This document shows, in pieces, positions 2,286-59,773 of a stretch of 64,000 nt of DNA. The DNA lies in contig OX337233.1 in NCBI GenBank assembly GCA_946965045.2, positions 248,001-312,000 on the forward strand. The letters are read 5' to 3'. The stretch's first letter is position 1, and every line of letters begins with the position of its first letter. The translations under genes were made by a program, and so were the position numbers. Source of the stretch: Epithemia pelagica (taxonomy: Eukaryota; Protista; Bacillariophyta). The notes below the pieces were generated by a model. That model did not search any database. It was not told where the DNA came from and worked only from the letters and a program-made list of their open reading frames with translations.

Positions 2286-3515
2286 TCAAGTTCCATCCTT
2301 CCCTTCATCACCACGGTGCGTGTGGGGCCTTGCTCGTTTACGATCTGATGTCCAGGTGGGGAAAGGCGAGTTATCAGCATGTTGGATATTCCTTCCTTCC
2401 CGAAATAGACACCATATGTTGAACTGCTGGTCAAAGAGTCGTTGAAAACACCACGTATGCTTGTCCAGTAGTGGTAATGTCGCACAGGTAGGACTTCCCC
2501 AGCCACTTATCACGGCAACTTGATTGGCAACAGTCACCGTACTGCAGTCATTGTAGTCATTTCCGAATGGTGGGAGATTCCAACCGCGGTTGTGGTGCGT
2601 ATCCAAGACTTCCACCGTTGAATTGCTCCATCCTCCAGCCACCACCAGACAAGATCCAACGGCAACCATTGCACAAGAACTTTGTGCATTGGAAAGCCTC
2701 AACTCCGACTGAGTGATCCAAGCGGACGAGAAAGATATGAACGTCGAGCCTATCTCCTTTTTTGTCGCATCATTGTCACAGGGTGTTGCATTGTCCAAAT
2801 ACTCCACCGAGTCAAGATGGCCATTATCGTTATGACCTCCAACGACAAAGATGCGGTGACCAATGACCGCACTGGCAAACCATTGTCGTGGAACAATCAT
2901 GCTTGGTCCAGCAATGACAGTGTGGCTGTTTGTATCTATAATATCCACCGACGACAAATAACGATCGCTGTATCCACCCATTACAACGATGTATCGGTTG
3001 TGAACCGCGACAGCACAACACCCATGTCGTCCAGATGATAACCGACATGTCAATGTCGTCCAATTACTCGCATGTGTGATGATGTTTGTTGTTAAAGGTG
3101 ATAGCAGCAAATCATTTTCGTCAATTCGTTCGATACAATCAAGTACTGAGCTTCCATTGTAGCCTCCCATGACGTAGACGCCACCGTTGCACACAACAGT
3201 GGCATGTCCAGAACGTTTCTGGTTCATGCGTGGCCCTTCTCGCCACTGCTTGGTTGATTCTGCCAAGTTTAATACAAGAATGGAATCGAGCGCGCCTTGA
3301 ACTGTCTGGTATCCACCCAACACGACGACGGTTTGTCTCTTGTTGTTGTTGTTGTTGTCGTTGCCGTCCGTATCGGGGTGATCAAGTACGACCGAAGTAT
3401 GACCTGCACGCCATCCACCCACAAGTGGAGGCCAGTCATTTTGATTCCACTCTGCTGTCTCGTCCGATAAGACAAGGCCCGACTGCCATGCTTGTTCTTT
3501 CAGTAACGTTGTCAT
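2286..3515 (-). CDS. Kelch-repeat beta-propeller protein, copy K1 (about 409 aa from MTTLLKEQAW)
   Basis: Six Kelch-type repeats with R-x-x-H/C-x-x-V...GG...S-V...W (e.g. RSGHATVVCNGGVYVMGGYNG, RQWFASAVIGHRIFVVGGHN). The start was set at the ATG conserved in all paralogs. Confidence 0.95.
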   Translation of the reverse strand: MTTLLKEQAWQSGLVLSDETAEWNQNDWPPLVGGWRAGHTSVVLDHPDTDGNDNNNNNKRQTVVVLGGYQTVQGALDSILVLNLAESTKQWREGPRMNQKRSGHATVVCNGGVYVMGGYNGSSVLDCIERIDENDLLLSPLTTNIITHASNWTTLTCRLSSGRHGCCAVAVHNRYIVVMGGYSDRYLSSVDIIDTNSHTVIAGPSMIVPRQWFASAVIGHRIFVVGGHNDNGHLDSVEYLDNATPCDNDATKKEIGSTFISFSSAWITQSELRLSNAQSSCAMVAVGSCLVVAGGWSNSTVEVLDTHHNRGWNLPPFGNDYNDCSTVTVANQVAVISGWGSPTCATLPLLDKHTWCFQRLFDQQFNIWCLFREGRNIQHADNSPFPTWTSDRKRARPHTHRGDEGKDGT

Positions 3516-6146
3516 GGTACAGCGCTTTACTAATACGTTGACAAGAAATGGCAGCACGAGAGAAAGTATTTTTGAGAGCAACGCGTGGAAGCGCTTTGCA
3601 TTTTTTGCGTGGAGACCGTAAGGTGTGCCTGTCCTGCGTACGATGGCGAAGGGAAATCAATCGCACATAGATTTCATGACAAGCCCCAAAAAGTATCTTT
3701 TGGTCGACGACGAAAGGGAGAGAGTGACAGCATTTGTGATGAAGAGGTCCTTTTGTATGATGAATAGGTCCACAGATTGACAATCCCTAATTTCCACACA
3801 ATTCTTCCCTTGGTCCTATACAGTCTGTTCACAACGACAACAACTTCAACAGAGAGATGTTGCAAGAGAGTGGTCTTCTTGCCTTCTTGATCCAATGATT
3901 CGAATGGGCATCACTCATCGGGTATAGTGAAGGAAGCAAGGTCCCAAGTACGACTAGACAGAGACGACAATCTGACGACCTGATTGACCAGAAGGAACAT
4001 GCCATTCATCCCATTGTGACTCGCTTCCCGTGTTGCATTAGCTCGCACCAGACGCCTGCATTCGGCTTTCGAGAATGTCACGTGGATGTGGTTGGACCGC
4101 AAAGGTTGGTCTCCTATGTCAGTATTGATACCGACTCCATCAATCATGGTCTTTTTGGGAGAGCCAAATCCGTCTCGTGCCGTCTGCGCCGGTTGTCAGC
4201 AATGCTCGCGCATGCGGTTCAATGATTGTGCAGACGGCCGCATATCGCACTGGCTCAATGGCCTCCGTTCGCGAGGGTGGGAGTCAGGACCTGTGCTACA
4301 TTTACCAATGGGTGAACTTGTCGTCTCGATTGAAAACCACAAGAGTTCAAGGAACAAAAGGTAGACCAGCGGAGTCGTCGTTTGGATCCACCTGGGGTCG
4401 AGAACGTACAAGAGTTTTATGTGTCAGAGGTTCCGGCAAAAGGACCTACAGCCAAAATAGAGCCAAACTTGATGAGGATTTCACGACAAATAAGAGAAGC
4501 CAGACTTGACAATCAATCAACATTCCTGTCCTACTCGTGGCAAGGTTTTGTTCGGGGAGTTTGTCATATAGCCCCTCTTGTGCTTGTTGTCGCTTCTTGC
4601 TGATTCTGCCGATTAGCTCGAGGTACAAAGATTGTCGTGGTGGAGTGGTGTAACCAATAACAAAACCAAAGTATAGAAGCAGAAACCATCCATGCTCGAT
4701 TTCCACCACGAAGAACCATCAGAAGTGGACAACAGTGACAACAAGAATCGCCTTGATCCATCCAAACAACACCAACTATACGAATCGTCTATCTCTTTCA
4801 TCAAGGATGACGACAAGAAGTGAAAAATCACAATCCCTGATCCACCAACAGCAGCCAAACACCAACAACAAGAACAATCGTCTCTTGCACAACAGGTCGA
4901 TCGATTCATCACCATCTCAATTGGTGGATCACATGACGACTTCGAAAGCAGTTGCCTTTTGTTGGAACAAGGTCCACCAGAAGCACAGTCTTGGGAATCG
5001 GAGCACCACCAATATTTGTACCCCGTCGACGGATTGGTTGCTCCACAACGAGACATTGACATCAAGAAAGAGGAATCGACGACGACCCACGATAAACCTG
5101 TCCTGCCTGCAGCACGGGAAGTATACTTTGCACTTTTGCCATTGCAACGGAAACAAAACGAAGGCAAACTGTGTTGGCTGCTGTCGGATCCAGCCGTTGC
5201 TACCAGTCCATGGCCCCACCGACTGTCCCACAACTATACGATCATGGTCGAAACGTCGCTTGTTCCTTATATGCCATCATTTGAAGAGACACAATTCAGT
5301 TTGCTCTTTTTTGTCTAAAAGATGCAACGAGGCCATGAAAGACCGCCATCTTCCGTTGAAAGATGATTCCTTCTGATCAAAGCCAGAGAGTTTTCAACAG
5401 CACAGAGAGGGAACGGTACCATGGCTATCTACCCAAGAGTGGTTACCAAACATTGGCAGGTTTGCAGAGGACGGCAGTGTCATGGCGGACGCTGTAACAA
5501 GGTTTCGTCAAAGAGTAGGTAGTGACTGCCCTTCTGCACTCTCTGTCTGTCTTTCGCTACCAGAGAACCCACGACAGAGCGAAGAGTAGGGATTGTACCT
5601 CTCTAGCTAGAGAGAGAAGCGGTCGATCCCATTTCTGTATGCTTTGGTCGATCGGGATCTTGCTCGAGTGCCCACCTACCTCTATCGATCAAGGCTATAT
5701 CCTTGGATATACCCGTGAGCCTCCAACCAAACATTCTTCTTTGGAAAGCGGAGCGCTTGAGTCGTACGCTGGATTCTGCTCGAAAGGATCCCATCCTACG
5801 GTGTTGTGCAGGCCTAAGAAACGACACAAAAAACTAGGTAGGACTATAAGCAATAAGAGACAGCCAAACTGATGTTTTGAGCAAGATAGACGCAGTGGAA
5901 CGTTGGTCGGTCCAAACGAAGGACGGCTGGTGTTCTTGGGTGACATTTCCGCTTCCTATTCTGCAAAATGACGTCAGTGCCAAAGAGGAAGTATGTCAAG
6001 ACTGATCACACTTTCCTTTTGAATAAATCCGTTGCCTAGTGGTGTTGTTCATACCATTCCAATTTGTGGTTCTGTGAAGCAAAAGTGAGTTGAACCATCC
6101 TGTTCCAATGGGGTGTTTCCTCCGCTTGATTATTCTTTCTATCAAT

Positions 6147-7559
6147 TTACTGCTCCAAATCTTGTACTTGCGCACAGACCATGTCACGAATCCGTTGTTT
6201 CAAGAAGGAATTACGACCCACGCCATCCTGGAGTGAAAAATAACGATCGATAGTGTCATTACCATGCGCCAAAATGGGTTCCTTCATCATTTCGTCGTAG
6301 GCCGTTTGGTTCGTTTCCAAGTGCACAATTTGTGCCAGGGCTTGTTGGGGACGACCCGGGTCGTAATAGACAAAGGCTCGAGGATTGAAAATATCAAATA
6401 CTTCTTCGGTACCGTAGTAAATCGGAATGCATCCGGCCCAAAAGGCCAGAACAATCTTTTCCGTAATGTAACCCGGTTGGTATTGGTTTTCCAAAACGAG
6501 ACAAAACCGATAATGACGATAGGATTCGAAATTGCTTCGCCAATTCCCATGCCAGCTTTTGGGTTTCCAGGGTGACATGGGGGGCTTCATGACACCCCCA
6601 CACTTGGCTCCCTTGTGAAGGGCCTTGGATCGATTTTTGTGGGCTTCCCGTGGTATCTTGGAAACGACCTTCGCAATGGCACGGAAGGCCTGTTCGCGAA
6701 ATCGGACACAATTGCTCGCCGTGTACAGCAAAAAGGCTTCTTCCGTGTTGCGTGGCTTTTGCAAGGGATCGAACAACCATTGCTGCATTTCGTGAGGGGC
6801 TTCGGCCACAATCTGACTGGCATAAAAGACTCGGACACTATAATTGGAGTCGGATGCGTAGCCCACATGAAAATTACGTCGCGGGGGAGCTATCACCACT
6901 GGCACGGAACTGTTGGACTCATTGGTTGCATGTTGTGGTGATAGTTGCTGTTGTTGTTGCTGATGTGGGAGTGACGATTGGTAGGAGGCAAAATTTTCCC
7001 AGATATCACCCTGTTTGGCCTCTTCATTGATGTGAAAGATCATACCGGGAAAGCGAAGCTGCAGGACTTGCAGTAGACGTGGTTGTCTGGGAAATCCTGG
7101 ACAGTGTCCACAGGATCCAAAGACAAGTACATCGTGTTGCGTGGCATGGCGAATCGATTGTTTCGTCAAGCGCTTTTTGGGGATGGAGGCAAATTCCGGG
7201 TACACGAGTGAGAGAAGGGCGTGTCGGTCGTGACCACAATGATAAATTTTAGACGGAAGCACGACTGGCCACGGTGTGGCTTGACAAATGGGTGTAAGGT
7301 TAACAGCAGCAGCGTCCTTGGTAAGCGGAAGCATGAAATTGTCTCCTTCGACTTGTTGTTGTTTGTAGCCAAACTGATTCAGCTCGACGTTGGACCAGAG
7401 AGGAACAAGGTTGGCCACATTGGCCACCCAAAACGTCGACACGCAACTGAACAGAATCCCCTTTCGTAACAGAAAATGATTCCTTGTCTTTCTTACATGG
7501 CTTTTGCTCTTGACTTCAGAAAGTCCAGTGGCGTTCTTCTTTTGTGGAGGGACACTCAT
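6147..7559 (-). CDS. Glycosyltransferase family 10 (alpha-1,3/4-fucosyltransferase-like), probable type II membrane protein, 470 aa
   Basis: Has the GT10 alpha-1,3 motif YRFCLVLENQYQPGYITEKIVLAFWAGCIPIYYG, the upstream LYTASNCVRFREQAF motif, and an N-terminal basic stretch followed by a hydrophobic segment (GILFSCVSTFWVANVANLVPLW). Confidence 0.9.
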   Translation of the reverse strand: MSVPPQKKNATGLSEVKSKSHVRKTRNHFLLRKGILFSCVSTFWVANVANLVPLWSNVELNQFGYKQQQVEGDNFMLPLTKDAAAVNLTPICQATPWPVVLPSKIYHCGHDRHALLSLVYPEFASIPKKRLTKQSIRHATQHDVLVFGSCGHCPGFPRQPRLLQVLQLRFPGMIFHINEEAKQGDIWENFASYQSSLPHQQQQQQLSPQHATNESNSSVPVVIAPPRRNFHVGYASDSNYSVRVFYASQIVAEAPHEMQQWLFDPLQKPRNTEEAFLLYTASNCVRFREQAFRAIAKVVSKIPREAHKNRSKALHKGAKCGGVMKPPMSPWKPKSWHGNWRSNFESYRHYRFCLVLENQYQPGYITEKIVLAFWAGCIPIYYGTEEVFDIFNPRAFVYYDPGRPQQALAQIVHLETNQTAYDEMMKEPILAHGNDTIDRYFSLQDGVGRNSFLKQRIRDMVCAQVQDLEQ

Positions 7560-8510: not shown

Positions 8511-8600
8511 GAGGCCAATCGTTTTCATTCCACTCTGTTGTGTCTCGTCCATAAAGACAAGGCCTGGCTGCCATGCTTGTTCTTGCAATGCCATGTTCAT
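8511..8600 (-). pseudogene. Isolated 5' fragment of a Kelch-family gene
   Basis: Reads MNMALQEQAWQPGLVFMDET, then frameshifts and stops. Upstream DNA (CATGGCTCCAAACGTTGACTGCGGAATTTATG on +) matches the leader of K6. Confidence 0.8.
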
Positions 8601-8904
8601 GGCTCCAAACGTTGACTGCGGAATTTATGAGGATCGCGAGCGAGTGTTTGCGGCTCTGATGGGTGCGGACCGATGTGTACAGAGAGTGTCTGTCGTACGT
8701 ACGCTATCGACATGACAGCACCACAACCGCATAATATATGTGTCGACAAAAGAGTCACCAACAGCAAGTTTATTTGAACGGCAGTCCACCTGGTTGCGCC
8801 AGTCTGGAGATTACGTCCTTCCCCATGCTTCTCAATGTTCTGTGGTGGCAGTTGAATAGTTCCTAAAGGATCTGTTTCAGCTAACGAAATACATGTCTCC
8901 ACCA

Positions 8905-11234
8905 TCATGAAATCTTTAGAGCATCAAAGAGCTTCTCAACTCGATCCTGATTGTGGGACGGCTTTCGCAATAGGTTCTTCGGCGACTCTTCACATGCCAC
9001 AAAGGCATGCGAAGAATAGATCTCGGTCTGCTCCAAACCATGATACAGGTTTCGAACTGCGTTTGAGACACCAAATTCATCCTTCTCGGGTACGCAAACC
9101 AAACGGAAGACATCGGTGTCCGGAAATGGCTTCAAACTCATGGAACTCAGGTTTTCATCGGAAATAGTGGGAGTTTCTGAGCAGCCCAGCAAAATAATAA
9201 TACACACGGCGGTGGGTTCCGCTTCATCCTTTCGAAGGTCTTTCAGAAACTCCGTCATCGTGGCCGACCAAAGATCAACATCTGATTTCGAAAAATTGGC
9301 CCAATTCTTGACAGTCACAAGCAGAGGATGAAACGTGCAGCGTGCCGGGGAGACCTGTTTTACCCTGATCGATGCCGCAATATCAAAGGCCTTGCAATTC
9401 TTGTAGGCATAGCTGGCAAGACCTGCGAGATAAAGGCGGCTCAAAAATGTTTGCTTGCAGAAAGAGTTTGCTCGAAAATCATTTCGGCAAACTTGGATAA
9501 AAGATATGGTGTTTGAGGTTTCTCCAATTCTCTCTTGGGTTGTAAGGATGGCAGCGTCAGAGTCCATCGCTAGATATTCAGGATGGGCATTTCCCTCCGC
9601 AACTTCCGGGCTGGTGTCGGTTGGTTTTCTGCCGCCCCTTTTCAAGAGTCGAAACCATTCGTCCAACGAAACAGAAAACAGTAAAGCTCAGGGTCCGCCT
9701 CTTTTCGAAGCACATCACCGCAGAAAAGCATGTACAAAGCGGCAAAAATTTCGACCGCGTCGCCCTTATCGGGTAGACACAATTTGGTTGTGAATGCCTT
9801 CTCCGCCTGGTGCGTCCAAAATTGCTTCCCGTGGCCCTGGAGCTCCCCGTCCTTCCACGTTTCGTCCATCAACCGCATGGCCAGGGTCGCGCACAGAGGA
9901 TCCGGCATGAATGTCACTTGTGCCGCAGGAGTAGAGGCATTGGTCTCCTGTTGCCGAAAGCTGACCAAACAGGCGTATCCAGAGCTCACCAGTTCGGTCA
10001 ATGTGTCAAAGGAGTTGACGATTCCCATCTGCACTCGCGTACCCAAAACGCTGTAGCAGGCAGGAAGATCCCTTTCATAGTTTGCTGATGACAACACCAA
10101 ACGCTTTGAAAATTCTGTCAGCTTTTTCTGATTTAGCGTTTTTGTGTTGGAGTAGTAGGCAAACAAAGGTCTTCCGTAGATAACCGCATCCGGAAATTGT
10201 GACTCTTTGGATAATGGTGCGCTGGAGCTGCTCAAAGTTTCTTGCTTCTCCTTTCGCAAACAAGAAATTGTATTCAGCTCAAAAAAAGGCGGATACAACA
10301 TCTTGTTGTCGGCATCACCGGCTTTATAATTCACGTATGTGACCCTTGCTTTTCGTGAAGCACCTTGCCTCGGGGGATCTGGTGGGAAAAAGTTGGAGAG
10401 CTTCGCAGTCGTTCCAGCAAAGACGGCAACCACATGGACGTTGCGCTGTTTCCGCAGCCACCATCGAATGGCTCGAAACACAAGAGAACCCTTCCCTTGA
10501 ATGTCAACTCCTTCCATCAGACCTTGTGCTTCATCGAACAGAAGTACCACTTTGTCACTCAATCCACGAATAATGCTGTCCATTCTTGCAAAGACAGCAT
10601 CCACTATGTCGTCATTGTCGGTGACTTTGACGAGATAGTGGTCAAAAAACTGTTTTTGTTTTTCTTGGCTCAGATGTGCGTCAAGGCAGAGGATGGTTTT
10701 ACAGTGTTGTCCTTCATGTTGGCCATAACGGTCGCGAAACTCTTTGAACAATTTGGTTTTCCCCATTCCACTTGATTGAACGAGTGCAAAGTAGGGCGCC
10801 AGAAATTGCTCATGATCCGATTCATGCCAGGAAAAGAGATTTTCGATTCGTTCCTCAAATGCTTCCAAGTCGAAGGTGTGCGCAAGCGGTGTATCCAAAC
10901 CATCCACAATGCTGGGACCTCGATGATTGGATTTGGGCTCTTCAGGTTCCGGAAACAAGATTTCCAAGGCCTCTTTTGCATGATCCTGCGTAAAATTTCC
11001 ATGAGTCGAAAGTAAACATCCTTCGAGAAAACCGGCCCGAATTTTTTCATCGATTTTCCGGGAATGTATGGCTGACTTGGCTTCTTTCAACTTCGGGACA
11101 ATACTGACGTCCAAATCATTCTCGTTCGCGAATCTTAGCAACGACTGTTCGGTTCCTTCGTCCATCTCCATGTCGCTTGCACTCATCATCGTCGAATTGG
11201 CTTCCAAGCGAGGCTTTTTCGTTGGACCGTTCAT
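8905..11234 (-). CDS. P-loop NTPase fused to a C-terminal PD-(D/E)xK-like nuclease domain (Crinkler-associated NTPase-REase type), split by a 1-nt frameshift near 9678
   Basis: Walker A context APYFALVQSSGMGKTKL, Walker B VVLLFDEAQ and GTTAKLSNF. The second ORF carries AFDIAASIR..PLLVTVKN. Adding one T to a T4 run joins ..PELYC to FSVSLDEWFRLL, giving about 776 aa. Confidence 0.7.
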
Positions 11235-11735
11235 CCTCTGTGTTGTGTGGAAAGCCCTTCCGTACGCAGCGAGAGCGAACGTGTGTGTGTGTTGTGTGTG
11301 TGTGTGCGCGCAGGGTCTGTCAGTCTGTCCAATTTTTACCGACAGCGACTGCCGCGCCCAAAGAAAACCAAGACAAAACAACGAATACAAGGAAGCGGCA
11401 TGGACAAAACCCCCGCAGTCGTCCCATGTTGCCCAAGCTACCAAACTACACGACAGTTCGATTTCTGTGCGATTGGGGTCCTGAGTCCTGAGGCAATGGG
11501 ACGACGACGACGAATCACCTCGCTGTTACGAGAGTACTTGACCGTAGAACTATGGTCACTAGCTATTAGTACCACACACCATTGTCCCGTCTATACCGAT
11601 ATGGTACTAGGCCTGTAGATTCTTTTCTGCGAATACTACTACCTGTGTCAGTACGGCAGGACAAGATGCGAACCTATTATAGCTAGAACGCCTACGAACC
11701 ATCCCCTTTCGGGATGGTATGGAAAAACGGTTTTA

Positions 11736-37132: not shown

Positions 37133-37138
37133 GAAACT

Positions 37139-40408: not shown

Positions 40409-40592
40409 GGTCACGGCGCTTTACTAATTCGTTGACAAGAAATGGCAGAGGGTCAACGCGTGGAAGCTTTGCTTTTTTGCGTGGAGACCGCGGTGTGCTT
40501 TTTATGGAGACAGAAAAGGTGTGCCTGTCCTGCGTACGATGGTGAAGGACAATCAATCGCACATAGATTTCATGACAAGCCCCAAGAAAAGT

Positions 40593-44566: not shown

Positions 44567-44634
44567 GAGCATAGACAAACCGTACAAATATCTGTTCAAG
44601 TGACTGTGGTATCTAATATATATTTAGTTCATGT

Positions 44635-48826: not shown

Positions 48827-48979
48827 TAAGAAAACCCGTCCGTTGAGCATACGGAGCACCGTCATGGGTGCACGGGTACAAAAGTCATTCCAAACAAAGA
48901 AGTGAACTAAAATATAGGTTACAGAGTCACTACTCCCTATCTTGTCGATTTTCATACGTACGACATACATACTTTCTTA
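48827..48979 (-). repeat. 3' LTR (153 bp)
   Basis: TAAGAAAACCC...CATACTTTCTTA, identical by eye to 55055-55207. A short PPT-like TGAGGGGAC abuts it on the minus strand (48980-48988). Confidence 0.95.
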
Positions 48980-49108
48980 GTCCCCTCAAACAGTACTCGA
49001 CCCAATTGAGAACTGTTTGCCATCCCAGTAGTAAGTGTATTCGGGCCAACTAGCCCAGGAAACCTCAAGACCTGCACAAAACCTCATAAACAATGATGAG
49101 GAAAGGAC

Positions 49109-50040
49109 TCACTCTGGGGATCCATGATCATCAGTAATATCCCAAAGGACCAGACTCAACAAATGATTGCGTTTCTGTCCTCCTGGAATCACCTTGGTGG
49201 CCAAATCGGCTGGATTATGCTGCGTGGGAATATGTGTAGTCAACAATTCACCCATGGCAACGGCTTCTCTGACAGCATGATAGCAAATAGAATTGGACTT
49301 CTTCTTCAGCGATGATTCCGGCTTCGATGTATTATGAATCACGGACATGTTATCACCATAAAGATATGTAGGACCAGACAACGGCACTCCCATCATCCGT
49401 AATTTGTAGCGTAGTCCCCTGACGGCCTCCATGCCCGTCTTCATTGCGACAAACTCAGCTCCAAAAACGGATGTTTCGATGGTCGCTTGTCGCTTGGTAT
49501 ACCACATAATAGGTGCCATATTCATAAAGATGAAGAATCCAGTTCTAGATCGCCGTACCATCTTGTCACCAGCATGATCCGAGTCAACATACAGCCGCAG
49601 ATCCACTTCTTTACCACGTGCCTTTGGTGCATTCGGTGGAACTGCCTCCTTTACATCGCCGTAGAACTCCTTCCAGTCGCAATCTTCACGAAATTCTCGG
49701 AGGTCTATCTCGGGATAGGTCGGATCAAATGCCATCCTGGCATTGTGCTTGATTTTCAAATAGGAATACATATGGAACACTGCTTCCAAATGTCCTTGTC
49801 GTGGACTTGCCACTTGGGATGCTAACAATGATGTTTCGGTCATGATATCCACCCTTCCCAGTTCAACCATCCATCTGAAGACGCCAATCTGGGACTGGTA
49901 GAACGACACCTCGTCTTCATTCAGTTGATCTGTCACGTCCAGAACTGGGTCATATTCTGATGGGAACGGAGTCGCCGCGCGTTTTGCGAGCTTGCGGCCG
50001 CCACACTCGCGTTCCAAATACGTCTCAACATTCGAAAAGC
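49109..50040 (-). CDS. pol: Copia pol C-terminal part: end of RT and RNase H
   Basis: YQSQIGVFRWMVELGRVDI, LYVDSDHAGD..RRSRTG, ETSVFGAEFVAM, YGDNMSVI and NPADLATK. Separated from upstream pol by a 1-nt deletion near 50037 (SKYVQEA/SNVETYL). Confidence 0.9.
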
Positions 50041-53000
50041 TTCTTGTACATACTTGCTCGAACTTATAGCCCAACTGACAACGGAATTGGGCATGGTCAT
50101 GGGCTTAAGCTTCCCTCCAAGGTACATGTCAGGATTTCCGATCGAGCCCGGCTTCATAGGGAAGAAATGATCTAACTTGTGTAACATCGCAGTCGCATCG
50201 TGCGATATGGCCAAGACATTGTCTACGTACAGCAATACATAGGCGTAGTACTTGTGACCGTCACTCGGACGTGTCATAGGCTTCATCCGCAAGTCTCGAT
50301 CAGCACCCAAGCACGGATCGTACCCAAGAGTTCTCATACAACTCGCAAGGTGGTTGCGGAAACTTGCACCGGCACTCTTTAACCCATACAATGCTCGTAC
50401 AATATATGCACGCTTCCCAGCGTTGGACCCGAACTCGGGGCACAGTGCAGTCCAGATTTTCTCACTGTTCGGCGCAGTTAAATAAGCATTCTTGATGTCG
50501 GACGTTTTGACCTCTAGGTCGTTGAGAGCGGCAATAGTGAGGGCAATACGAACACTTTCTCGAGATACAACACTGGCATAAGTCAATGTTGCTGGTGCCT
50601 CTGTTGTGTGTCCGCCCGCTACAAACCGTGCTTTTCTCCTGAAATCTTCCATTTTTGCGTCGAAAACCATGTGGCATCGGATCTCCTGGAAGCCAGGAGC
50701 TGGTTTCTCGTCGTCTTCCATCAACTTGAACGCCACTCGAACAGCTTCCATCTCTTTCTCGATGGCCTTTCGCCGCAAGTCGTTGCCGTTCCTTCTGTCA
50801 AGTTTGTATGCTTCGGCAACAGTCTTGGGGATTTCGATCCCAAACTTGTGCGTCCGCTTGTGGTAGCGGCTGTTGACGGCGGCGAGTATCCGATCTCGTC
50901 GTCGGAGGAATTTACTCACCCACCAATCAAACGCTGGCTCGTTTTCAATCTGCTTTGCGATGGCGTACTCCGCCACTTCAATCGGATTTGATTCCTTCAG
51001 TCCGGCCAGGCGCTCCCAGGACGTTGATCCGTCGCGCCACTGGACGCACAACTCCCACCCTTTCGTCGTCTTCTTCCTGTGCTTCCGTCCTCGGACAACA
51101 ACGTAGCGGTTATCGTGGTCGACAGCGGCTTTGGTCTTGCGATGGTCAACAATGCTGTCCAACAGCAAGAATTGGTTTCCCTCGGCATCGCACTGCGCAT
51201 ACATATTTTCCGCGATGACATTCGCGGCATACTCAGACGTCTCGCCGTCTGGAAACTCAACAACATAAACTCTCGAGTCTAGGATCGGGTTGTGGGACGA
51301 CGTCCCCTTGAGACGGCCATCGCTGGTCTTGGACCGTCTTTTCACCTTGCCCGTCACCATTGCATCACCCTTCGGCAACAAGACGTCGGCTCCAACGTAG
51401 TTATCGTAGGTGTCTGGTGTGATGTCGTCAATGTCGGGTGCAATCGGTGGCTTGGGGTCATCATCGTCTTCATACGCCTCGTAGGTCGGCGTTTCCACAT
51501 CAACTAGACCATCGTAGTCTTCGACTTTAGCTACAATGCCTAACTTCTCGTTGACCTTGCTCGTGTAGTCTTTTCTCTTCTCTATTTCAGTCGGGTCACG
51601 GATTTCGTCGTCCGTCAGATGTCGGTAGGTCGAGCGAATCTTGATCATTCCTGACTCGGCTAGGATCTTAATTGCATGTGCGGGTCCCATGTCCGTCGCA
51701 GGACCTAGGTACCTACCCAGTTTCTCCTTGTCTTCCGGGTAGTTGGCCGCTGAGTCGTAGTAATAAACCCAGTCGTACCACCCATATCCAGCCAAGAGTG
51801 ACATGTCAAAGGTCTCCCCGTACATTGCCGTTTCCGGGATTTGACCTGACAGCTCGAAATTACTATGACATGTAGCCGATCTGATATAGGCTTCCAACTC
51901 GAGGCAATGATCCCACAATACCTTGGGAGATTTAGTTGAGACCATTTTCCGTCCAGTACCACGCTTCAACTCCCTAATTGCACTCTCAGCCGCATTTGCC
52001 CATGGAGTATAGGGCTCCAACTGTTTCACTCGACAACCAGCCTCTCTAGACTTCTTCCTGAACTTGCCCTTGACCTGTTCCGCGGCACCATCCATGATTA
52101 GTTCCGGTGGACGGCCTTCCCTCTGGAGCAACAACGACAAAGCTTCGTGTGCATCGCCTTTCGAGGCCAGAGGGTACGCTCTAGTCCATCCATTCCTTGC
52201 CGTGAAGACTTGGGCACAAGTATTACCCAGCCTAGACTTCACCTTCGAAAACATAGTGTCCGTGAATAAGGGATGAGGCAATGGCCGGTATCGGTGAAAC
52301 CGGTCGTTCGTCGTGAACCTCTTGGTCAGGGGGTTCAATGTGGTACGTAGACCACGTTGCGTCGTCACTCGAAGGGTATCCGCTGCACGTTCCAATCCAC
52401 ATCCCCATCGACGTGCCAAAGTCTTGGCATCGATAGCTTTTCCAGAAGGGGCAGTTTGTGTAACGGAAAGAGTCGCCACGCGTGCTTGCAGAGCAGTCGC
52501 GAAGCATGCGGTTTCCGACGGTCGCGAATCAGAAAGCAAAGTCGTGAAAGGGTCATTGGGTCCCCTTGAGCGAACGGTGGAAATCAATCGTTGGAGGGCC
52601 GCTCGGGCCGACATTTCATCCCGAGCGAAAGAGTCATCTTGGGGGTCCCACGGCGGGTCGGGACTAGTCAAATCAAAGCGACGACATGAAGCATATTCGT
52701 CGGAAGTGGGGGTCCTTGTAGGGAAATAGGAAGTGACACCACATAAATCAAGGGGTATCACAAAATCCTCATCGTCCTGATCTTTCAGGACCAGTGCGTG
52801 TGTCTTATTGTCGGGATTATTGGTCAAGAATTTCGGTTGGTCCGAAACTTGCACGTCATTCATCCACAACTGCATAGGGCACAGGAGGTTGTGAGTAAGC
52901 GATGGTATAGAAATGGCCTGGTTCACGAGTAGGATCAATACTTCACCGGTATCGGGGCAATCGTAAGCTAGAGCCGCACTTATAGTCTTGCAACTCTTGT

Positions 53001-53140
53001 GAACCACGCCCTGAGAAGAATCATATCCCTTGACATCCACAGGGCGGCCATAGTCCTGTACAACCATCGCAGACCTTCCAACAACACAAGCTCGGTACGA
53101 GACTCGCCCTCGTCGGACGTGTCAACCGCACCGACACGCA
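49933..53140 (-). CDS. pol: Copia pol: protease remnant, integrase, chromo-like insert, RT (defective)
   Basis: Integrase D,D,E (FTDTMF, LIMDGA, WANAAESAIRELK). RT motifs CHMVFDAK..RKARFVAGGH, DIKNAYL, ALYGLKSAG and LLYVDNVL (YVDD changed to YVDN). The protease SRTEL..CVVG lacks its Asp motif. Confidence 0.9.
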
Positions 53141-53156
53141 CTGAGCGGACCACCGC

Positions 53157-54209
53157 TCATTTCCGTGATTTCTTCTGGCGGGTTAGCGCCGGATTGTCGC
53201 GATTCGACTCGGGCTTGCGCTTTCCCGCAGGCTTGGCATCATCATCAGAACTATCGGACGATGAGCCAGGATGTACGCCCTGCTGGCGTAATCCTTCCAA
53301 GATCGCGTGTTGATTCACGTGAATCTTACAGTATTTCTCGAAGTTGAACCGCTTATGTTCACCGTTGTAACTCGTGTTCATAAGTTTCCGTTCAGCTTCG
53401 TTGGCCAAATTATTCGCGTTGTTCGGCCCTAAGTAATGGTCAAACAAGGCTTGATAAGCCGCTCGCCCGTCGCGATTTCGGCTTGCCTTGCGGATGTAGG
53501 TGGAACAATCCATCCGTTCGCACATAGCGGACAAACGGATCCAAACCTTGGCTCGATCCTGCAAGTACTGACGGGTAAAACCGTCGTTCGGTCCGTTTCC
53601 AACACGGTGACGAGCGCGTGCAATCATCTCGGCCTCGTCGGACTCAAGTCCGCCTTGCGGGTCAGCTCCGGGAAATTCGTCCGTCCGGATCACGTACGCC
53701 AAAGGTATACCGGACGTGCCTTGGCACTCGGCGAAGTACTCCTTAATCAACTCGATGTTCCGCGGCCAGTCACGATTGTCGAGCTCGGGTGCTTCCGGAT
53801 CATCGTGCATGGTCTCATATTCTTTGAGGTCTCGCATAGGGCGAATGTTCGCCATCGTCAAATCGTTCGGCGTGGTGGCCCGATCGATGCGGATACGGTG
53901 GCGGACAAAGTAACATGCCAACTTGAGATTCGTCTCGGCTAGGATCGAAACCTCAAAGCCTGGATTAGGGACAGGCGGCGGAGCTGCCACTCCTGCCGCA
54001 GCGGCAGGAGGAGCTTGGATACCACCGGGGCGACGGACGGCCTTACAGAGATTAGTGACGCCGTCGTCGTCCAAGTCGCGGAGATCTTCGATCGAGGAGA
54101 GTCCTTGGCGGTCCACAAGGTACTGGGATGCCGGGTTGGAGAACTGGAGGCGGATGAACGCCTGGCACATTGCAGCTGGAGCGGCCATGGTAATCAAAAC
54201 AACAATCAA
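53157..54209 (-). CDS. gag: Copia Gag, 350 aa, possibly internally deleted
   Basis: CoDi-type gag motifs (AVRRPGG, GTSGIPLAYVIR, YLQDRAKVW, DGRAAYQALFDHYLG, FNFEKYCKIH) and terminal NRDNPALTRQ. Confidence 0.85.
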   Translation of the reverse strand: MIVVLITMAAPAAMCQAFIRLQFSNPASQYLVDRQGLSSIEDLRDLDDDGVTNLCKAVRRPGGIQAPPAAAAGVAAPPPVPNPGFEVSILAETNLKLACYFVRHRIRIDRATTPNDLTMANIRPMRDLKEYETMHDDPEAPELDNRDWPRNIELIKEYFAECQGTSGIPLAYVIRTDEFPGADPQGGLESDEAEMIARARHRVGNGPNDGFTRQYLQDRAKVWIRLSAMCERMDCSTYIRKASRNRDGRAAYQALFDHYLGPNNANNLANEAERKLMNTSYNGEHKRFNFEKYCKIHVNQHAILEGLRQQGVHPGSSSDSSDDDAKPAGKRKPESNRDNPALTRQKKSRK

Positions 54210-55041
54210 CTCGTAACTTCTTGAAACACTTCCTCAAAAGTGAGCTTTCCAAGACGAGTTTTGCCATGATTTTAATCCATTACCTACGTAGAACCACTAC
54301 TGGGTTGCACACAATCCTTGATTGTTGCTCAAAATCGGTCGTGCCAGACCTAACCCACATGATCTTGGCCCTAATTGGCTAGATCCACATAGGAGCCCGG
54401 AAAAGTCTTTTCGTCGGTTCCACAAGACACCCGAACCACGTCTAGGTATATTTTGTCCTGCAGTGGAAGGCCTCACATGGAGCTAAGCTCATGTGCTCTC
54501 GGCCAGAGGGATAACAAACCGCAAAATGTGAGACAAGTCCCAAACGGTTGCGATGCGACACTGTACTTATTCCAAAATTCAGCACTGTGCAACAATGAGT
54601 ACCCCCCTTCCGTTGAGAAGGCTGTTTCGGACACATGCCCCCATTTCATCCACATGAAGACTGGTCCCAGGAATATTCTCCGGACCATTTTCCCAGGGTA
54701 AAATGCGAATCACACATATAACTGGTTTTGGGATGCGTTCTGATTTCGAATTCCGCAACCATGGCGGATCTGGTTCACTGGGATGGATCCAGTAGGGAAG
54801 ACCGTCGCCATTCCCCCAGTCTGCGCACCTTTTCGCAGACAACGGTAGCGCCAAACAACAGTAACGTACCATTATCATTGTGCCTGCACGAGCCCATTCA
54901 CAGGTGCAATAGGTCAGCCAATGAGCCCCGACAGTTGGGTTATATCTGTCGGTTTGCCTTATAGGCTTGGGGCATTACGCCAACGGTCGCAGCCATCTGT
55001 CCAGGCATTGGACCGTCTACTTCCATGTTATCGACCGGTTT

Positions 55042-55054
55042 GGGTCTGATAAAC
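55042..55054 (-). promoter_or_regulatory. Putative primer-binding site GTTTATCAGACCC
   Basis: Immediately follows the 5' LTR on the element strand and resembles the tRNA-iMet PBS TGGTATCAGAGC but is degenerate. Confidence 0.45.
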
Positions 55055-55207
55055 TAAGAAAACCCGTCCGTTGAGCATACGGAGCACCGTCATGGGTGCA
55101 CGGGTACAAAAGTCATTCCAAACAAAGAAGTGAACTAAAATATAGGTTACAGAGTCACTACTCCCTATCTTGTCGATTTTCATACGTACGACATACATAC
55201 TTTCTTA
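55055..55207 (-). repeat. 5' LTR (153 bp)
   Basis: Identical by eye to 48827-48979; 7-bp terminal inverted repeat TAAGAAA...TTTCTTA. Confidence 0.95.
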
Positions 55208-58200
55208 CGTGGAGACAGAAAAGGTGTGCCTGTCCTGCGTACGATGGTGAAGGGCAGTCAATCGCACATAGATTTCATGACAAGCCCCCAAAAGTATCTT
55301 TTGCTGTAAAAGATACGACGACGAGGGAGAGAGAGAGAGCGACATTTGTGATGAAGAGTCCTTTTGTATGATGAATAGGTCCACAGATTGACAATCCCTA
55401 ATTTCCAAGTCATCTCGTCCCACGCCATTTATGGAGCAACACCATTCTTCCCTTGGTCCTATACAGTCTGTTCACAACGACAGCAACAACAGAGAGAGTG
55501 GTCCTCTCTTGACTTCTTGATCCAATGATTCGAATGTGCACCGCTCATTGGGTTGTTTTCGAGAATGTCACGTGGATTTGGTTGGACCGCAAAGGTTGGT
55601 CCTGTGGCAGACGCGTATTGCACTGGTTCAAGGGCCTCCATTCGCCAAGGTGGGTGTCAGGACCGGTGCTACATTTGCCAATGGGTGATGGTGTTGTCTC
55701 GATTGAAAACCACAAGAGTTCAAGAAGGAAAAAACTAGACCGGATGAGTCGTCGCTTGGATGCACCTGGCGTCGAGAACGTACAAGAGTTTTGTGTGTCA
55801 GGCTATGTCAAATTGCCGGTGTCAAACCACTAATGACGAAAATACACCGTTGCAACAATAGAGGCCCTTGGAAATTGCAGGATGAAACTGACAGATTCGA
55901 GAGTTGCATTCTTGTGGGTCCTTTCGAAAAACATCCAGTTCCGCGATTTCTGAAACAGAGGTGGTAGGACAACGGCAAAAACAGGAACTAGACAATGACA
56001 GAGTGGCGTTGTCCAATGCCAGTGTGTTCTCTGACATGAAACATCGAACGCGAACATGGATATCGACTGTGAATCCAAACCTGATAGCAGCAGCAGCGGT
56101 AACATTGCAGTTTGAGTATGGCTCGATCGACTCTCTGGTGTTTACTGGCCTGGAGTTTGGTCCTTAGTTTGACAACACCCGACAAGCTTCAAGCAATGTC
56201 CTTGTCGATGCAAGGACGGCAACCAGAATGCATCTCTTCAGCCAACGTGACGCAAGTGTGCTTTCGTATGATGAAGAGGTCCACAGATGGCCAATCCAAC
56301 ATCCAACATCCACTGAGTCGATATCCCTAGTTTCCAAGTCATCTCTCGTCCAAAGCCTTTTATGGAGCGCCATTGTTCCCGTGGTCATGCGGACTGTGCA
56401 CAATGACAGCAACAACAACAACAGAGAGTGGTCTTCTTGACTTCTTGATCCAAAATGATTCGAATGGGCATCGCTTTGTGACGGAACCAAGGCCACAAGC
56501 ACAACTACGCCAAAACGAGAATCTGACGACAAGATGGACCAGAAGGAACATGTCATTCATCCCATTATGACTCGCATCAGGTGTTGCATTAGCTCGCAGC
56601 AGAAGCCTGCATTCGAGGAGACAAGGCAGTAAGACCACAAACAAGAGTATATGTTAGTATCGAGCCCGAAGAGAAGACCGTTCATTGACAAGATGGAGTG
56701 ACTGAACTGATAAGACAAGACGGCGACAAGAATCGCAAATTCTCAAGAATGAGCAAATTGGCGGTTCACATTCCAGATCTCGAATGACTAGACATCAGAT
56801 CCCCGAAAACAAACGATGCAGTACCATCATACATGCTAGCCAGCCAGAACACGGCAAACAGGACGAAGAGAAGGACACTGACAAAAATGAAGATAGTAGC
56901 TCCGACGAACGGAGGAGCAAGATTAACAGTCCAATTGCAAGAACATTTCTGGCGCTTCTTGCAGTGTCGCTTCCCGTTCCTCCACAAAGGCGAGAATAGG
57001 GTACCGCGATGGTTTTTGAACCAACAACAGAAGACAAGTTCCATTGAACAACTGTCGACCTGGTAGTGCCAGTCGAGAGACTAGTTCCTTCCACTTGCTT
57101 CTCAACGACAGTTCCATTCCGTCTTTGCTCAATCAACAATCATTCGTTCTTCACATGACGACGAGGAATGTAGAGAAGCAGCAACCAACCATGCTCGATT
57201 TCCAAAAAGAACCATCAGAGAAGCGGACTACAGGGTCCGCAAGGTTTCGTCATTCGTGCTTTTACTCCTCCGTCTCGTCCTTTTGTCGGATTCATCGACC
57301 ACGACCATGAACCAAGCCAAAACATGGAGCACGACCAGATGTCGAAGCTTATGGTTCGTGGAGGAAAGGAGCAAAGACAATGCAGTCACTTGATTGTACT
57401 ACGATATGTTGACGACAACATACAACAACAACAACCAATTACACCCAAACAACAACAGCAAGAACAACCATCCTGCTCTTTCATCAAGGAGCATGACAAG
57501 AAAAGAAAAATCATGATTCCCGATCCACCAACAGGACCGAAACAACAACAACAACAATCGTCGGATGCACAACAGGCATCCCGTTTTGTCCTCCCTCTCG
57601 TAGGAGTGAATGATTGGTTTTGATCGATCATCGGCAATTGGTGTGGACCAAAGAACGACTACCACGACAAGTTGGTTATTTTGGAACAGGGTCCACCAGC
57701 ACCCCAGACTGAAACGACTGACACAGTAGCACAACCACTACCTTTACGGCGTCGAGTGATTTGTCGCTCCAACAAGGAGGAACCAACCACAAGAGGAACA
57801 AGCCGATGCGGCAAGAACCGCCAGGACTACACATGCTTCTTTACTCAAACCAGACAAGAAGTCCACCAATATCAAAACCAATTACTGCGGAGACTCTCCC
57901 TCGGTGTTCTTCAAGTATTGTTTGGATGGTAACAAATGATCCACCAATGGTCGTGGTCCACAGCAAAACTGTGTCGTAGCAACAGCATCCCAAGCCAAGA
58001 AAGAAAGGATGGAACACCCTTGACAGACACGGCAACCACAATGTCAAAAAACCATGCCTGAATTTGCCCGGTCACGAACCCTAAAAGTACTCTTCACTGC
58101 TCAATCGTAGTGGACACAAAATGGCGACCAACCGTATTGCCCTTGGCTACGACATCGATGCGAAACTCGTCCTTTCTGGAGTGCACCACTGTCGGCTTCC

Positions 58201-58552: not shown

Positions 58553-59538
58553 TCATGCCGAGGTGAAGAAGGGTGAGATATCATCATCTCGGATACCCAC
58601 ACCTTCAAGAGAATGATGCCATCCGTTCGGTTGCTGCTCACAGAGTCGACGAAAACACCATGAATTTCTATCCAGAAGTGGTAATGTTGCACAGGAAGGA
58701 TTGCGGAGTCCACCAATCACGGCAACTTGATTGGCAACAGTCACCATACTGCAGCCATTGCGGTGATTCACGAATGGTGGGAGATTCCACATGCAGTTGT
58801 GATGCGTATCCAAGACCTCCACGGATGATTCGTATCCTCCAGTCACCACTAGACAAGATCCCACGGCAACCATTGCATAACAACTTCGTGCATTGGAAAG
58901 CCTCAACTCCGACTGAGTGATCCAAGTGGACGAGAAAGACATGAACGTCGAGCCTATCTCCTTTTCTGTCTCATCATTGTCAAAGGGTGTTGCATAGTCC
59001 AAATACTCCACCGAGTCAAGATATTCATTACCGTTCCAACCTCCAACGACAAAGATGCGGTGGCCAATAACCGCACTGGCACACCAATGTCTTGGAACAG
59101 TCATGGATGGTCCCTCAATGACAGTGTGGTTGTTTGTATCTATAATATCCACCGACGACAAATGACGATCGTTGTAGCCACCCATTACAACGATGTATCT
59201 GTTGTGAACCGCGACTGCACCACATCCCCATCGTGGCGTTGATAAGCGACAATTCAATGTTGTCCAATGACTATCCTGCGTGGTGGCGGTTGTTAAGGAT
59301 GATCGAAGCAAATCATTGGCGTCGATTCGTTCCATACAAGCCAAGTATGCTCCATTGTATCCTCCCATCACGTAGACCCCTCCATTGCACGCAAGAGCAG
59401 CATGTCCATAACGTGCCTTGTTCATGGATGGCCCTTCTCGCCACTGCGTTTTTGATTCTGCTAAATTTAATACAAGAACGGAACTGACATCACCTTGGTC
59501 TTGTTGCCATCCACCGAACACGACGACCGTTTGTCGCC

Positions 59539-59622
<84 letters not shown>

Positions 59623-59773
59623 CATTCTTATCGGGATGATGGAGTACAACCGTAGCATGAAGCGAACGCCATCCACCCTCGAGGGGAGGCCAGTTGTTTT
59701 CATTCCATTCTGGTGTCTCGTTCATCAGGACAAGGCCCGACTGCCATGCTTGGTCTTTCAGTGTTGTGGTCAT
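58553..59773 (-). CDS. Kelch-repeat protein, copy K10 (406 aa) with an Asn27 run
   Basis: MTTTLKDQAW start, six Kelch repeats, intact. Confidence 0.95.
59540..59620. repeat. Perfect (GTT)27 microsatellite, coding poly-Asn in K10
   Basis: 81 bp of uninterrupted GTT on + (AAC on the coding strand). Confidence 0.95.

Follow-up and report, generated by a model that had tools for sequence, protein, structure and literature searches.

Among described proteins, the closest in fold to those reported here are the Kelch domains of KLHL12, KLHL20, KLHL3 and KEAP1, six-blade propellers with the same repeat register, in which the DA and BC loops form the substrate-binding face and make up the peptide-binding pocket. 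These domains are accompanied by BTB-BACK and represent one gene per specificity. The pocket residues of KEAP1 are Tyr334, Ser363, Asn414, Arg415, Arg483, Ser508, Tyr525, Ser555, Tyr572 and Ser602 (PMC6891428). At the level of gene families, a parallel is offered by the expanded F-box (including F-box-Kelch) and MATH-BTB proteins, with hundreds of clustered lineage-specific paralogs that combine a constant part with a fast-evolving binding part. Immune or conflict roles have been proposed for such families in plants and nematodes (PMC8120010, PMC3719486). Here we describe a diatom family of Kelch propellers that is likewise made up of hundreds of clustered lineage-specific paralogs (about 350, in subtelomeric arrays), with a constant part and a fast-evolving, putative binding part, and that varies in the same DA and BC loops. 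Its members are only about 20-25% identical to the KLHL and KEAP1 domains and are without any other domain; whereas F-box and MATH-BTB proteins carry a defined ligase-docking domain, none is detectable in the diatom proteins.

Stand-alone Kelch genes in subtelomeric arrays

On a chromosome of 3.86 Mb, the window, by which we mean the whole stretch of 64,000 nucleotides that was analyzed, occupies kilobases 248 to 312 counted from the left telomere; contigs of the assembly end in telomere repeats. It contains nine uninterrupted minus-strand ORFs of 359-409 aa, each consisting of a six-blade Kelch propeller alone, in agreement with the preliminary description of nine full, open copies on one strand. 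The copies, with coordinates that start at the conserved Met, and two gene fragments are as follows:

2286-3515, minus strand, K1: stand-alone six-blade Kelch gene, 409 aa, intact (Kelch_1 E 2.4e-31)
8511-8655, minus strand: Kelch fragment, 5' end and leader (self-BLAST)
13867-14222, minus strand: Kelch fragment, derived from within the 3' part (self-BLAST, 82-91% identity to full copies)
17147-18226, minus strand, K2: 359 aa, intact (ORF and Kelch_1); recent duplicate of K4
19825-20994, minus strand, K3: 389 aa, intact (Kelch_1 E 4e-39); reference copy, folded by AF2
25402-26484, minus strand, K4: 360 aa, intact (ORF and Kelch_1)
29843-31009, minus strand, K5: 388 aa, intact (ORF and Kelch_1)
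34540-35685, minus strand, K6: 381 aa, intact (ORF and Kelch_1)
39308-40408, minus strand, K7: 366 aa, intact (ORF and Kelch_1)
47515-48717, minus strand, K8: 400 aa, intact ORF, cut off from its upstream box by a copia insertion
58553-59773, minus strand, K9: 406 aa, intact (ORF and Kelch_1)

Identity to K1 among the window copies is 67-76%, and K9 has a long Asn run within the A-B loop of blade 1. The propeller frame is open in all nine window copies and in 66 of 68 fetched copies, despite a piS of about 0.2-0.45 between copies.

The Pfam profile Kelch_1 (PF01344) was matched by all nine proteins, with E values of 1e-27 to 1e-39 and scores of 94-132 bits (cut-off 20.1), and PF24681 (KLHDC2/KLHL20/DRC7 Kelch) was also matched above its cut-off, with Kelch_FKB95 matches confined to the propeller and weak, sub-threshold matches to NANM. 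Pfam returned Kelch families alone for the nine proteins, with no match to BTB, BACK, F-box or SOCS at E up to 0.01, which bears out the earlier statement that BTB and F-box are missing. Only about 20-35 residues, hydrophilic in character, precede blade 1, and it is from this lack of a hydrophobic N-terminus that a cytosolic location is inferred. The AF2 model of K3 is a six-blade propeller of 24 strands in six sheets (pLDDT 74 overall and >90 in blades 2-4), for which Foldseek identified KLHL12, KLHL20 and KEAP1 with a probability of 1.00, E about 1e-18 and a TM of about 0.8 by target. HMMER alignments to designed Kelch proteins showed the register of Kelch repeats, which are tandem units of about 45-55 aa, with Arg, GG, Tyr and Trp conserved; a search of the ESM Atlas returned generic Kelch clusters only. 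The constant parts of each protein comprise an N-terminal peptide (consensus MTTTLKEQAWQSGL), the beta-sheet scaffold and a short C-terminal helix (NSWCFRRLCEQQ), and both the peptide and the helix are kept even in relatives at 37-54% identity. On inspection by eye, the helix has no match to the BC-box consensus [STP]LxxxCxxx[AILV].

Genome-wide, the family has about 350 copies in the 60.5-Mb telomere-to-telomere genome, a count based on 336 matches to a 5' motif and 355 to a blade-5 motif (controls, 0). The majority are in subtelomeric arrays oriented towards the telomere, and near-identical pairs were found on different chromosomes. In a second assembly, another member of the family occupies the K2 position of the syntenic locus. 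Similarity between copies stops about 100-250 nt beyond the ORF, the flanks being a patchwork, and no shared terminal repeats were seen around the Kelch copies by self-BLAST or upstream alignment. Upstream DNA is conserved for about 250 nt only, in two or three classes, and there is therefore no shared upstream exon. One class contains a 22-nt box about 145-185 nt ahead of the ATG, with six matches in the window against 0 expected; K3, K5 and K9 have an upstream region of another class. The boxes and the neighboring features are:

3660-3681, minus strand: conserved 22-nt upstream box (motif matches and upstream alignment)
18376-18397, 26634-26655, 35870-35891, 40556-40577 and 55261-55282: more copies of the 22-nt box (same evidence)
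6147-7559: GT10 fucosyltransferase ORF, open
9642-11444: P-loop NTPase ORF, 600 aa, open
41147-46335: two-gene DNA transposon
about 48827-55207: copia element, pol split over two frames
48827-48979 and 55055-55207: terminal repeats of the copia element, 153 bp, 100% identical

The identity of its terminal repeats indicates that the copia element inserted recently, and the box at 55261-55282 is orphaned on the far side of it from K8. The intact Kelch genes had previously been contrasted with broken neighbors, including ankyrin and SOUL genes. That contrast was not borne out: the fucosyltransferase and NTPase ORFs are open and neither ankyrin nor SOUL was matched in Pfam among 30 scanned ORFs. 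P-loop NTPase genes, with 40 copies, and TIR genes constitute other chromosome-end families in this genome. We also considered a special nucleotide element at the 5' end of the Kelch genes and rejected it: the first 20 codons have a synonymous diversity of 0.24-0.26, towards the bottom of the values along the gene but unexceptional.

The organism is identified as a diatom by 17 silicon-transporter matches, and the family appears to be lineage-restricted. Of the 30 representatives looked up, all are ENA records except for a transcript-like protein from Logan and a giant Kelch protein of generic type from green algae, and the two whose sample was checked are both from assembly ERZ21939226. Divergent single-copy relatives are located among ordinary host genes, and viral contigs and JGI metagenome contigs, searched with two leader patterns only, yielded no relatives. 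No paper describing the family was found in the literature on kelch expansion or subtelomeric kelch in diatoms. As to transcripts, the contigs of four runs of one study that hold the stretch span genes and intergenic DNA alike, and none of these runs is recorded as RNA; run X4, small and uneven in content, may be an RNA run, which contig depth cannot show. A relative at 41% identity, from another organism, is represented by transcript-like 1.45-kb contigs in three runs (SRR26379917, SRR26379919 and SRR26379920).

Variation, selection and recombination on the propeller

An entropy map of 60 genome-wide copies (K3 numbering) has near-invariant strands, with peaks at the R+1/R+2 positions past the conserved Arg of each blade (residues 37, 38, 99, 159, 207, 208, 275 and 318) and just past each GG (residues 66-72, 116-120, 178-182, 224-229, 292-294 and 335-336). 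Hypervariable post-Arg and post-GG loops on conserved strand cores, the pattern originally noted in the window, thus recur across the genome. These variable positions form a ring of some 20-30 residues over all six blades, in which aromatic and charged amino acids are frequent, and 55 distinct 12-site signatures occur among the 60 copies. The KEAP1 pocket residues would fall at Arg+1/+2 and GG+1/+6, a putative mapping that serves as a lead.

The copies are mosaics. In AU tests, each of three gene segments rejected the trees of the others with delta lnL of 900-1600, and within the window the K2 segment 16819-18648 and the K4 segment 25074-26899 are 96.8% identical, with 7.1% difference within residues 150-232 and 0.83% outside. 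Residues 150-232 of this pair thus have the pattern of a short conversion-like tract. The pervasive recombination seen in the AU tests led us to drop a single-tree codon site model as evidence (2dlnL 722, or 201 with synonymous-rate variation). A site model on eight segment trees (2dlnL 527, 35 sites) was given less weight, as null simulations with recombination gave 2dlnL of 45-199 and 15-36 false sites; recombination makes codon site models unreliable here, and from this model we retained only the contrast between the two loop faces. The flagged sites number 27 in the DA/BC loops versus four in the AB/CD loops; 20% of them are aromatic, versus 5% in other loops. The disordered loops of the opposite face vary less than the DA/BC loops. 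Together these data support diversification of the family specifically on the face whose loops KEAP1/KLHL propellers use for substrate.

The preliminary description had expected dN/dS above 1 at loop sites, and this was found for a part of them. Among independent closest pairs, dN/dS is 0.38 in strands, indicative of a scaffold under purifying selection, 0.35-0.51 in AB/CD loops and 0.74-0.80 in DA/BC loops; it reaches 1.42 (CI 1.1-2.0) for the Arg+1/+2 class and 0.97 for the post-GG loops as a class, a value compatible with relaxed constraint. In a tree-free, cross-validated, home-made test, the 20 most variable sites had a dN/dS of 1.38 on their own dS and 2.08 on gene-wide dS (synonymous differences are likewise raised at hypervariable codons). 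Under a null that combines omega no greater than 1 with recombination, 150 simulations averaged 1.07 and 1.18 and peaked at 1.40 and 1.43; the observed values exceeded 149 of them (own dS, p about 0.007) and all 150 (gene-wide dS, p below 0.007). The most variable face positions thus change faster than synonymous sites. In contrast, the eight most recent duplicate pairs have no face excess (0.54 in face loops versus 0.68 elsewhere), and this result, together with the post-GG value of about 1, speaks against a simple 'arms-race' reading.

A candidate repertoire of binding proteins and its alternatives

On balance, we believe that the approximately 350 stand-alone propellers, with their constant scaffold and variable binding face, probably constitute a repertoire of intracellular binding proteins. 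New copies arise by tandem and inter-subtelomere duplication and are reshuffled by recombination or short-tract gene conversion. Each germline-encoded propeller could act inside the cell as a binder of individual specificity; a shared partner might engage the constant termini, and candidate outputs are immune-like sensing, ubiquitin-ligase targeting or some other process. The initial proposal of a diversifying cytosolic recognition repertoire is supported in part, namely for loop-face diversification, for scaffold constraint and, in a recombination-robust test, for a dN/dS greater than 1 where variability peaks; recent pairs, which have no such excess, argue against its simple arms-race form. 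We put forward more tentatively, as a possibility that we would not yet favor, that a diatom lineage has a germline-encoded, antibody-like intracellular recognition system, in which hundreds of Kelch binders are diversified by subtelomeric gene conversion and diversifying selection and interleaved TIR-domain genes could signal or execute.

A repertoire of binders has to be weighed against functionless subtelomeric amplification, in which segmental duplication and ectopic recombination multiply the genes and loop variation reflects relaxed constraint in a redundant family. The crowding of P-loop NTPase (40 copies) and TIR genes at chromosome ends is in keeping with such a process, as are the coverage of Kelch genes and spacers alike by contigs of four runs, none recorded as RNA, the dN/dS of about 1 in post-GG loops, the omega of about 0.6 without face excess in recent duplicates, and the 15-36 'selected' sites that recombination alone produces in site models. 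However, nearly all copies are open despite a piS of 0.2-0.45, strand dN/dS is 0.38, the top 20 sites exceed the neutral-plus-recombination null, and the disordered loops of the opposite face are less variable than DA/BC, leading us to regard amplification without function as unlikely. We give a similarly low standing to the idea that the proteins are ubiquitin-ligase substrate receptors, whose variable face would pick substrates and whose conserved N- or C-terminal peptide would be an unrecognized docking motif, comparable to the box that KLHDC2-type CRL2 receptors have at the C-terminus; the family would then stand beside the expanded F-box and MATH-BTB adaptors. In favor of this, the nearest solved structures are Kelch domains from CUL3 adaptors, PF24681 was matched above cut-off, both termini are conserved in the 37-54% identity relatives, and positive selection on expanded adaptor families has precedents in nematodes and plants (PMC8120010, PMC3719486). 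Against this, BTB, BACK, F-box and SOCS were unmatched in Pfam, the C-terminal helix is without a BC-box consensus by eye, and the N-terminal peptide is shorter than an F-box requires.

Two further explanations concern a different kind of protein and a different kind of gene. A small-molecule-binding or enzymatic Kelch, like NanM, galactose oxidase or plant specifier proteins, might use pocket variation to tune its substrate range; stand-alone Kelch enzymes do exist, and the weak sub-threshold NANM matches point in their direction. We consider this very unlikely for the present family, as conservation is lowest for the residues around the central pocket, which leaves no catalytic or metal-binding set in place, and as the best fold matches are the protein-binding KLHL and KEAP1 domains. 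The least probable explanation of all, and one we hardly entertain, is that a mobile element or an integrated virus carries the genes, which are amplified by transposition. Uninterrupted ORFs, a high copy number and the transposons within the array (copia and the two-gene element at 41147-46335) would suit it, but similarity ends about 100-250 nt past the ORF in patchwork flanks without shared terminal repeats, no target-site duplications or common termini were seen around copies, viral contigs yielded no relative to two leader patterns, and the divergent single-copy relatives sit amid ordinary host genes.

Comparison with known recognition and antigen families

Much of the carbon fixed in the ocean is fixed by diatoms, whose attackers include viruses, bacteria, oomycetes and chytrids; to our knowledge, almost nothing is known of how diatoms recognize them. 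A set of about 350 variable-face propellers is a concrete candidate for such recognition, and roles as degradation adaptors or as mating or self-recognition factors are equally possible. If true, an antibody-like Kelch system would be a novel type of innate immunity or non-self recognition, and one present in a major marine algal group. This would be the first case known to us of a stand-alone Kelch propeller as the variable module, as opposed to LRR, Ig, F-box-linked or MATH modules.

Other Kelch proteins share parts of this architecture. The F-box-Kelch (FBK/KFB) SCF adaptors have an N-terminal F-box of about 45 aa, to which Pfam gave no match here. In the CRL2 receptors KLHDC2, KLHDC3 and KLHDC10, as in the diatom proteins, the propeller is the sole large domain and is followed by a short C-terminal extension; however, KLHDC2-type receptors are single-copy conserved genes with a BC and Cul2 box, whereas the diatom family is hypervariable and no such box was recognized in it by eye. 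In genomic organization, the family resembles the subtelomeric contingency families Plasmodium var, trypanosome VSG and Pneumocystis MSG, which diversify by ectopic recombination and also have arrays at chromosome ends, interchromosomal exchange and gene-conversion mosaics. Those genes encode parasite surface antigens for immune evasion, whereas the genes described here encode presumably soluble propellers with a hydrophilic N-terminus. A parasite style of subtelomeric mosaic diversification is present here in a free-living alga.

Kelch genes of the window and their surroundings

The minus strand of the window carries nine uninterrupted ORFs of 359–409 residues (67–76% identity to K1), all of which matched Pfam Kelch_1 (E 1e-27 to 1e-39). 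Their other Pfam matches were also to Kelch-type families only, with no BTB, BACK or F-box among them, in agreement with the preliminary description, which had reported nine open copies on one strand and the absence of BTB and F-box domains. The features of the array are as follows.

Features of the window (Kelch ORF coordinates start from the conserved Met)
K1, 2286-3515, minus, intact Kelch ORF
GT10-type fucosyltransferase, 6147-7559, minus, E 2e-10
Kelch fragment, 8511-8655
P-loop NTPase ORF, 9642-11444, minus, open, 600 aa
Kelch fragment, 13867-14222
K2, 17147-18226, minus, intact Kelch ORF
K3, 19825-20994, minus, intact Kelch ORF
K4, 25402-26484, minus, intact Kelch ORF
K5, 29843-31009, minus, intact Kelch ORF
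K6, 34540-35685, minus, intact Kelch ORF
K7, 39308-40408, minus, intact Kelch ORF
K8, 47515-48717, minus, intact Kelch ORF
Copia-type element, 48827-55207, 153-bp terminal repeats at 48827-48979 and 55055-55207, 100% identical
K9, 58553-59773, minus, intact Kelch ORF

Similarity between the copies extends over the ORF and ~100–250 nt on either side, with various other repeats forming the patchwork of the spacers. Two or three classes of upstream region can be told apart, and one of them has a 22-nt box ~145–185 nt before the ATG (six matches, none expected). A run of Asn codons in K9 (59539-59622) encodes ~30 consecutive Asn in the A-B loop of blade 1, a loop of which the other copies have a short, Asn-rich version.

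The neighbouring genes had been described as broken, which proved mostly not to be the case. The fucosyltransferase is an intact gene amid the Kelch genes, and the P-loop NTPase ORF (weak matches to AAA_22, ATPase_2 and TniB) is open and belongs to a family with 40 matches and arrays of its own (C8, 377-544 kb; C9, 354-580 kb; C10, 497-590 kb). Neither ankyrin nor SOUL was matched in 30 scanned ORFs. An 1139-aa ORF (plus) and a 566-aa ORF (minus), placed tail to tail at 41147-46335, had no Pfam match. The copia-type element has gag and pol spread over three ORFs, with pol split in two frames; despite this split we consider it young, because its terminal repeats are identical. It was inserted ~110 nt ahead of the K8 start codon and has displaced the conserved upstream box to 55261-55282; the insertion is very recent, and may have severed K8 from its promoter. 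A 1,063-bp element, probably a young non-autonomous mobile element or solo repeat, occurs in two spacers (18514-19576 and 36070-37132, 99.4% identity) and at 11413-12475 of ctg1266l in the ENA assembly ERZ21939226 (98.6%).

Family size, chromosomal setting and relatives

The host genome (60.5 Mb, 23 contigs) is assembled telomere to telomere, with (CCCTAA)n at the start of C6 and (TTAGGG)n at the end of C13, and its 17 silicon-transporter matches (best E 2e-226) identify it as that of a diatom. On the 3.86-Mb chromosome C6, the window starts 248 kb and ends 312 kb from the left telomere. A protein search of the genome gave 108 scored matches (67–85% identity) out of 947 first-look candidates. 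Conserved 24-nt motifs at the 5' end and in blade 5 had 336 (≤2 mismatches) and 355 (≤3 mismatches) matches, respectively, with none for either reversed control, leading us to estimate ~350 family copies. Copies with the best scores occupy the terminal 50–800 kb of C6, C9, C10, C11, C13, C17 and C18 and point towards the telomere, those at the left end of C6 being on the minus strand and most of those at right ends on the plus strand. By a rough estimate from the listed positions, Kelch arrays account for a few percent of the genome. In the interior of C11 (1422042-1471276), seven exact blade-5 matches have a near-constant spacing of ~8,202 bp; here a unit containing a Kelch gene was amplified in tandem very recently.

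Besides the nine copies of the window, 66 of 68 fetched full-length copies are open through the propeller, a sample skewed to high-scoring copies in a family that also includes fragments. Most apparent stops from the genome search were natural terminations lying early in the C-terminal tail, which is variable. Pairwise synonymous diversity is ~0.2–0.45, at which unconstrained copies would by now carry stops.

The genome has 23 TIR_2 matches, seven of which are located within Kelch arrays (C6:227197-227523; C13:3076740; C17:3057799 and 3159511; C10:3375647; C11:3400532; C7:349390), at least six of these in the opposite orientation to the Kelch genes, although chromosome ends gather several expanded families.

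The family is very large, subtelomeric and lineage-restricted. A word-index search gave 642 proteins at E <1e-5, the best 120 all being paralogue-level matches from ENA, and an exhaustive search gave 151 representatives at E <1e-30, many of them full-length (38–56% identity) with the N-terminal motif and C-terminal helix kept. ENA records were the source of 28 of 30 representatives looked up; the two with a checked sample both came from ERZ21939226, one of them among ordinary genes. One exception was a giant green-algal Kelch protein of generic type. The other, P0204 (41% identity), occurred in three runs on 1.45–1.55-kb contigs that are filled by the ORF and carry an Illumina adapter at one end, and thus look like transcripts; its best match in the host genome reaches only 46%, so P0204 is from another organism. 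Divergent stand-alone Kelch clusters with ~40–46% identity to P0204 occur at C11:899-972 kb, C6:548-635 kb (plus) and C11:2.45-2.96 Mb, further from the telomeres, and the superfamily is consequently larger than the 350-copy core (803–947 first-look candidates). Two leader patterns found no relatives in viral or JGI metagenome contigs, and our literature search found no publication describing an expansion of Kelch genes in diatoms. The four sequencing runs retrieved all belong to one study, and none is recorded as RNA; their contigs cover every bin, spacers included.

Variation on the canonical binding face

AlphaFold2, run on K3 with a 112-sequence family alignment, predicted a six-blade propeller (mean pLDDT 74, >90 over blades 2–4); confidence was low for residues 1–18, for two low-complexity loops and beyond residue 350. 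Foldseek matched the model to the Kelch domains of KLHL12, KLHL20, KLHL3 and KEAP1 (E ~1e-18, TM ~0.8 by target). In a standard Kelch blade the D-A loop ends with a conserved Arg and strand B ends with a Gly-Gly doublet, which places the two residues after the Arg (Arg+1/+2) and the post-GG (B-C) loop on the same face. The pocket residues of KEAP1 presumably fall exactly at the Arg+1/+2 and GG+1/+6 positions, a mapping that serves as a lead. The pocket residues are Tyr334, Ser363, Asn414, Arg415, Arg483, Ser508, Tyr525, Ser555, Tyr572 and Ser602 (PMC6891428).

Among 60 distinct intact copies (nine from the window and 51 from other arrays), the columns of highest entropy were 159, 336, 318, 72, 38, 37, 99, 229, 118, 224, 119, 335, 316, 226, 157 and 180 (K3 numbering). 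With few exceptions these are Arg+1/+2, Arg-1 or post-GG positions, spread over all six blades, and the strands are almost invariant; the pattern of hypervariable post-Arg and post-GG residues alongside conserved strands first noted within the window therefore recurs genome-wide. Signatures of 12 sites took 55 different forms in the 60 copies. The family has a constrained scaffold with variation focused on the canonical binding face.

Recombination, selection and comparison with known systems

The copies are mosaic through recombination. Their nucleotide tree resembles a star and its internal branches are weakly supported, and three gene segments reject one another's trees (delta lnL ~900–1600, AU p 4e-4 to 1e-122). 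The nearest relatives of the window copies lie on other chromosomes, except for K2 and K4, a recent duplicate differing by 7.1% in residues 150–232 and 0.83% elsewhere. Of the five synonymous changes, four lie in this tract, as do several codons with multi-nucleotide changes, a clustering that marks conversion rather than point substitution. Pairs with pS ≤0.04 lie on different chromosomes (e.g., C6:55 kb and C13:3.16 Mb), and C9 and C17 have one identical copy in common. The region of ERZ21939226 syntenic to 17160-21389 is only 92% identical, bears a copia insertion that the window is without, and has a different family member (pS 0.24) at the K2 position, pointing to high haplotype or strain diversity at the locus. 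The K3 counterpart there has pS 0.045 and pN 0.016, with changes including Y37H, S295L, G335E and Y336L.

Global omega for the family is 0.58. A self-written FUBAR-like grid codon model gave 2dlnL 722 on one tree (201 with synonymous-rate variation), and 527 and 99.6 on eight segment trees, flagging 35 sites at P >0.95. Of these, 27 fall in DA/BC loops (the face that binds substrate in KEAP1/KLHL) vs. four in AB/CD loops on the opposite face (Fisher p 2e-4; p 2e-10 vs. all other sites), and Tyr, Trp and Phe make up 20% of residues at flagged face sites vs. 5% in other loops. However, null simulations in which omega never exceeded 1, with 38% neutral sites and 10-codon blocks from different trees, gave 2dlnL 45–199 and 15–36 false positives. 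Recombination inflates codon site models in this family; the site lists and likelihood-ratio test are accordingly unreliable as proof of omega >1, and only the loop-face contrast is informative. Tree-free estimates are listed below.

dN/dS over 30 independent closest pairs, without a tree
Strands: 0.38
AB loops: 0.35
CD loops: 0.51
DA loops: 0.80
BC loops: 0.74
Post-GG +1..5: 0.97
Arg+1/+2 class: 1.42 (bootstrap CI 1.1-2.0)

In two-fold cross-validation, variable sites were picked on half of the pairs and dN/dS was taken on the remainder; for the top 20 sites it was 1.3–1.4 (own dS) and 2.0–2.1 (gene-wide dS). The same statistics averaged 1.07 and 1.18 in 150 null simulations (maxima 1.40 and 1.43), corresponding to p ~0.007 for own dS, and none of the 150 reached the gene-wide value. 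The most variable face positions thus change faster than neutral, and diversifying selection on a subset of ~20 face residues is moderately supported. The expectation that loop sites exceed 1 held for these and for the Arg+1/+2 class but not for the post-GG residues as a class, and the other loop variation may in large part be near-neutral. Nor did it hold for the eight youngest duplicate pairs (pS <0.06), whose omega is 0.63 overall and 0.54 in face loops; this lack of a face excess counts against a simple arms-race picture. In our reading, conversion spreads standing variants.

We infer that the Kelch proteins are intracellular binders with copy-specific targets, which may engage a common partner through their constant termini. 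An immune-like role is speculative, with the TIR_2 genes inside the arrays as context. The proteins belong to neither the BTB-Kelch nor the F-box-Kelch class, because the docking domains are absent. In structure the closest known kind are the Kelch domains of KLHL proteins and KEAP1, and in evolutionary mode the F-box and MATH-BTB adaptor families, which are expanded and positively selected (PMC8120010, PMC3719486).
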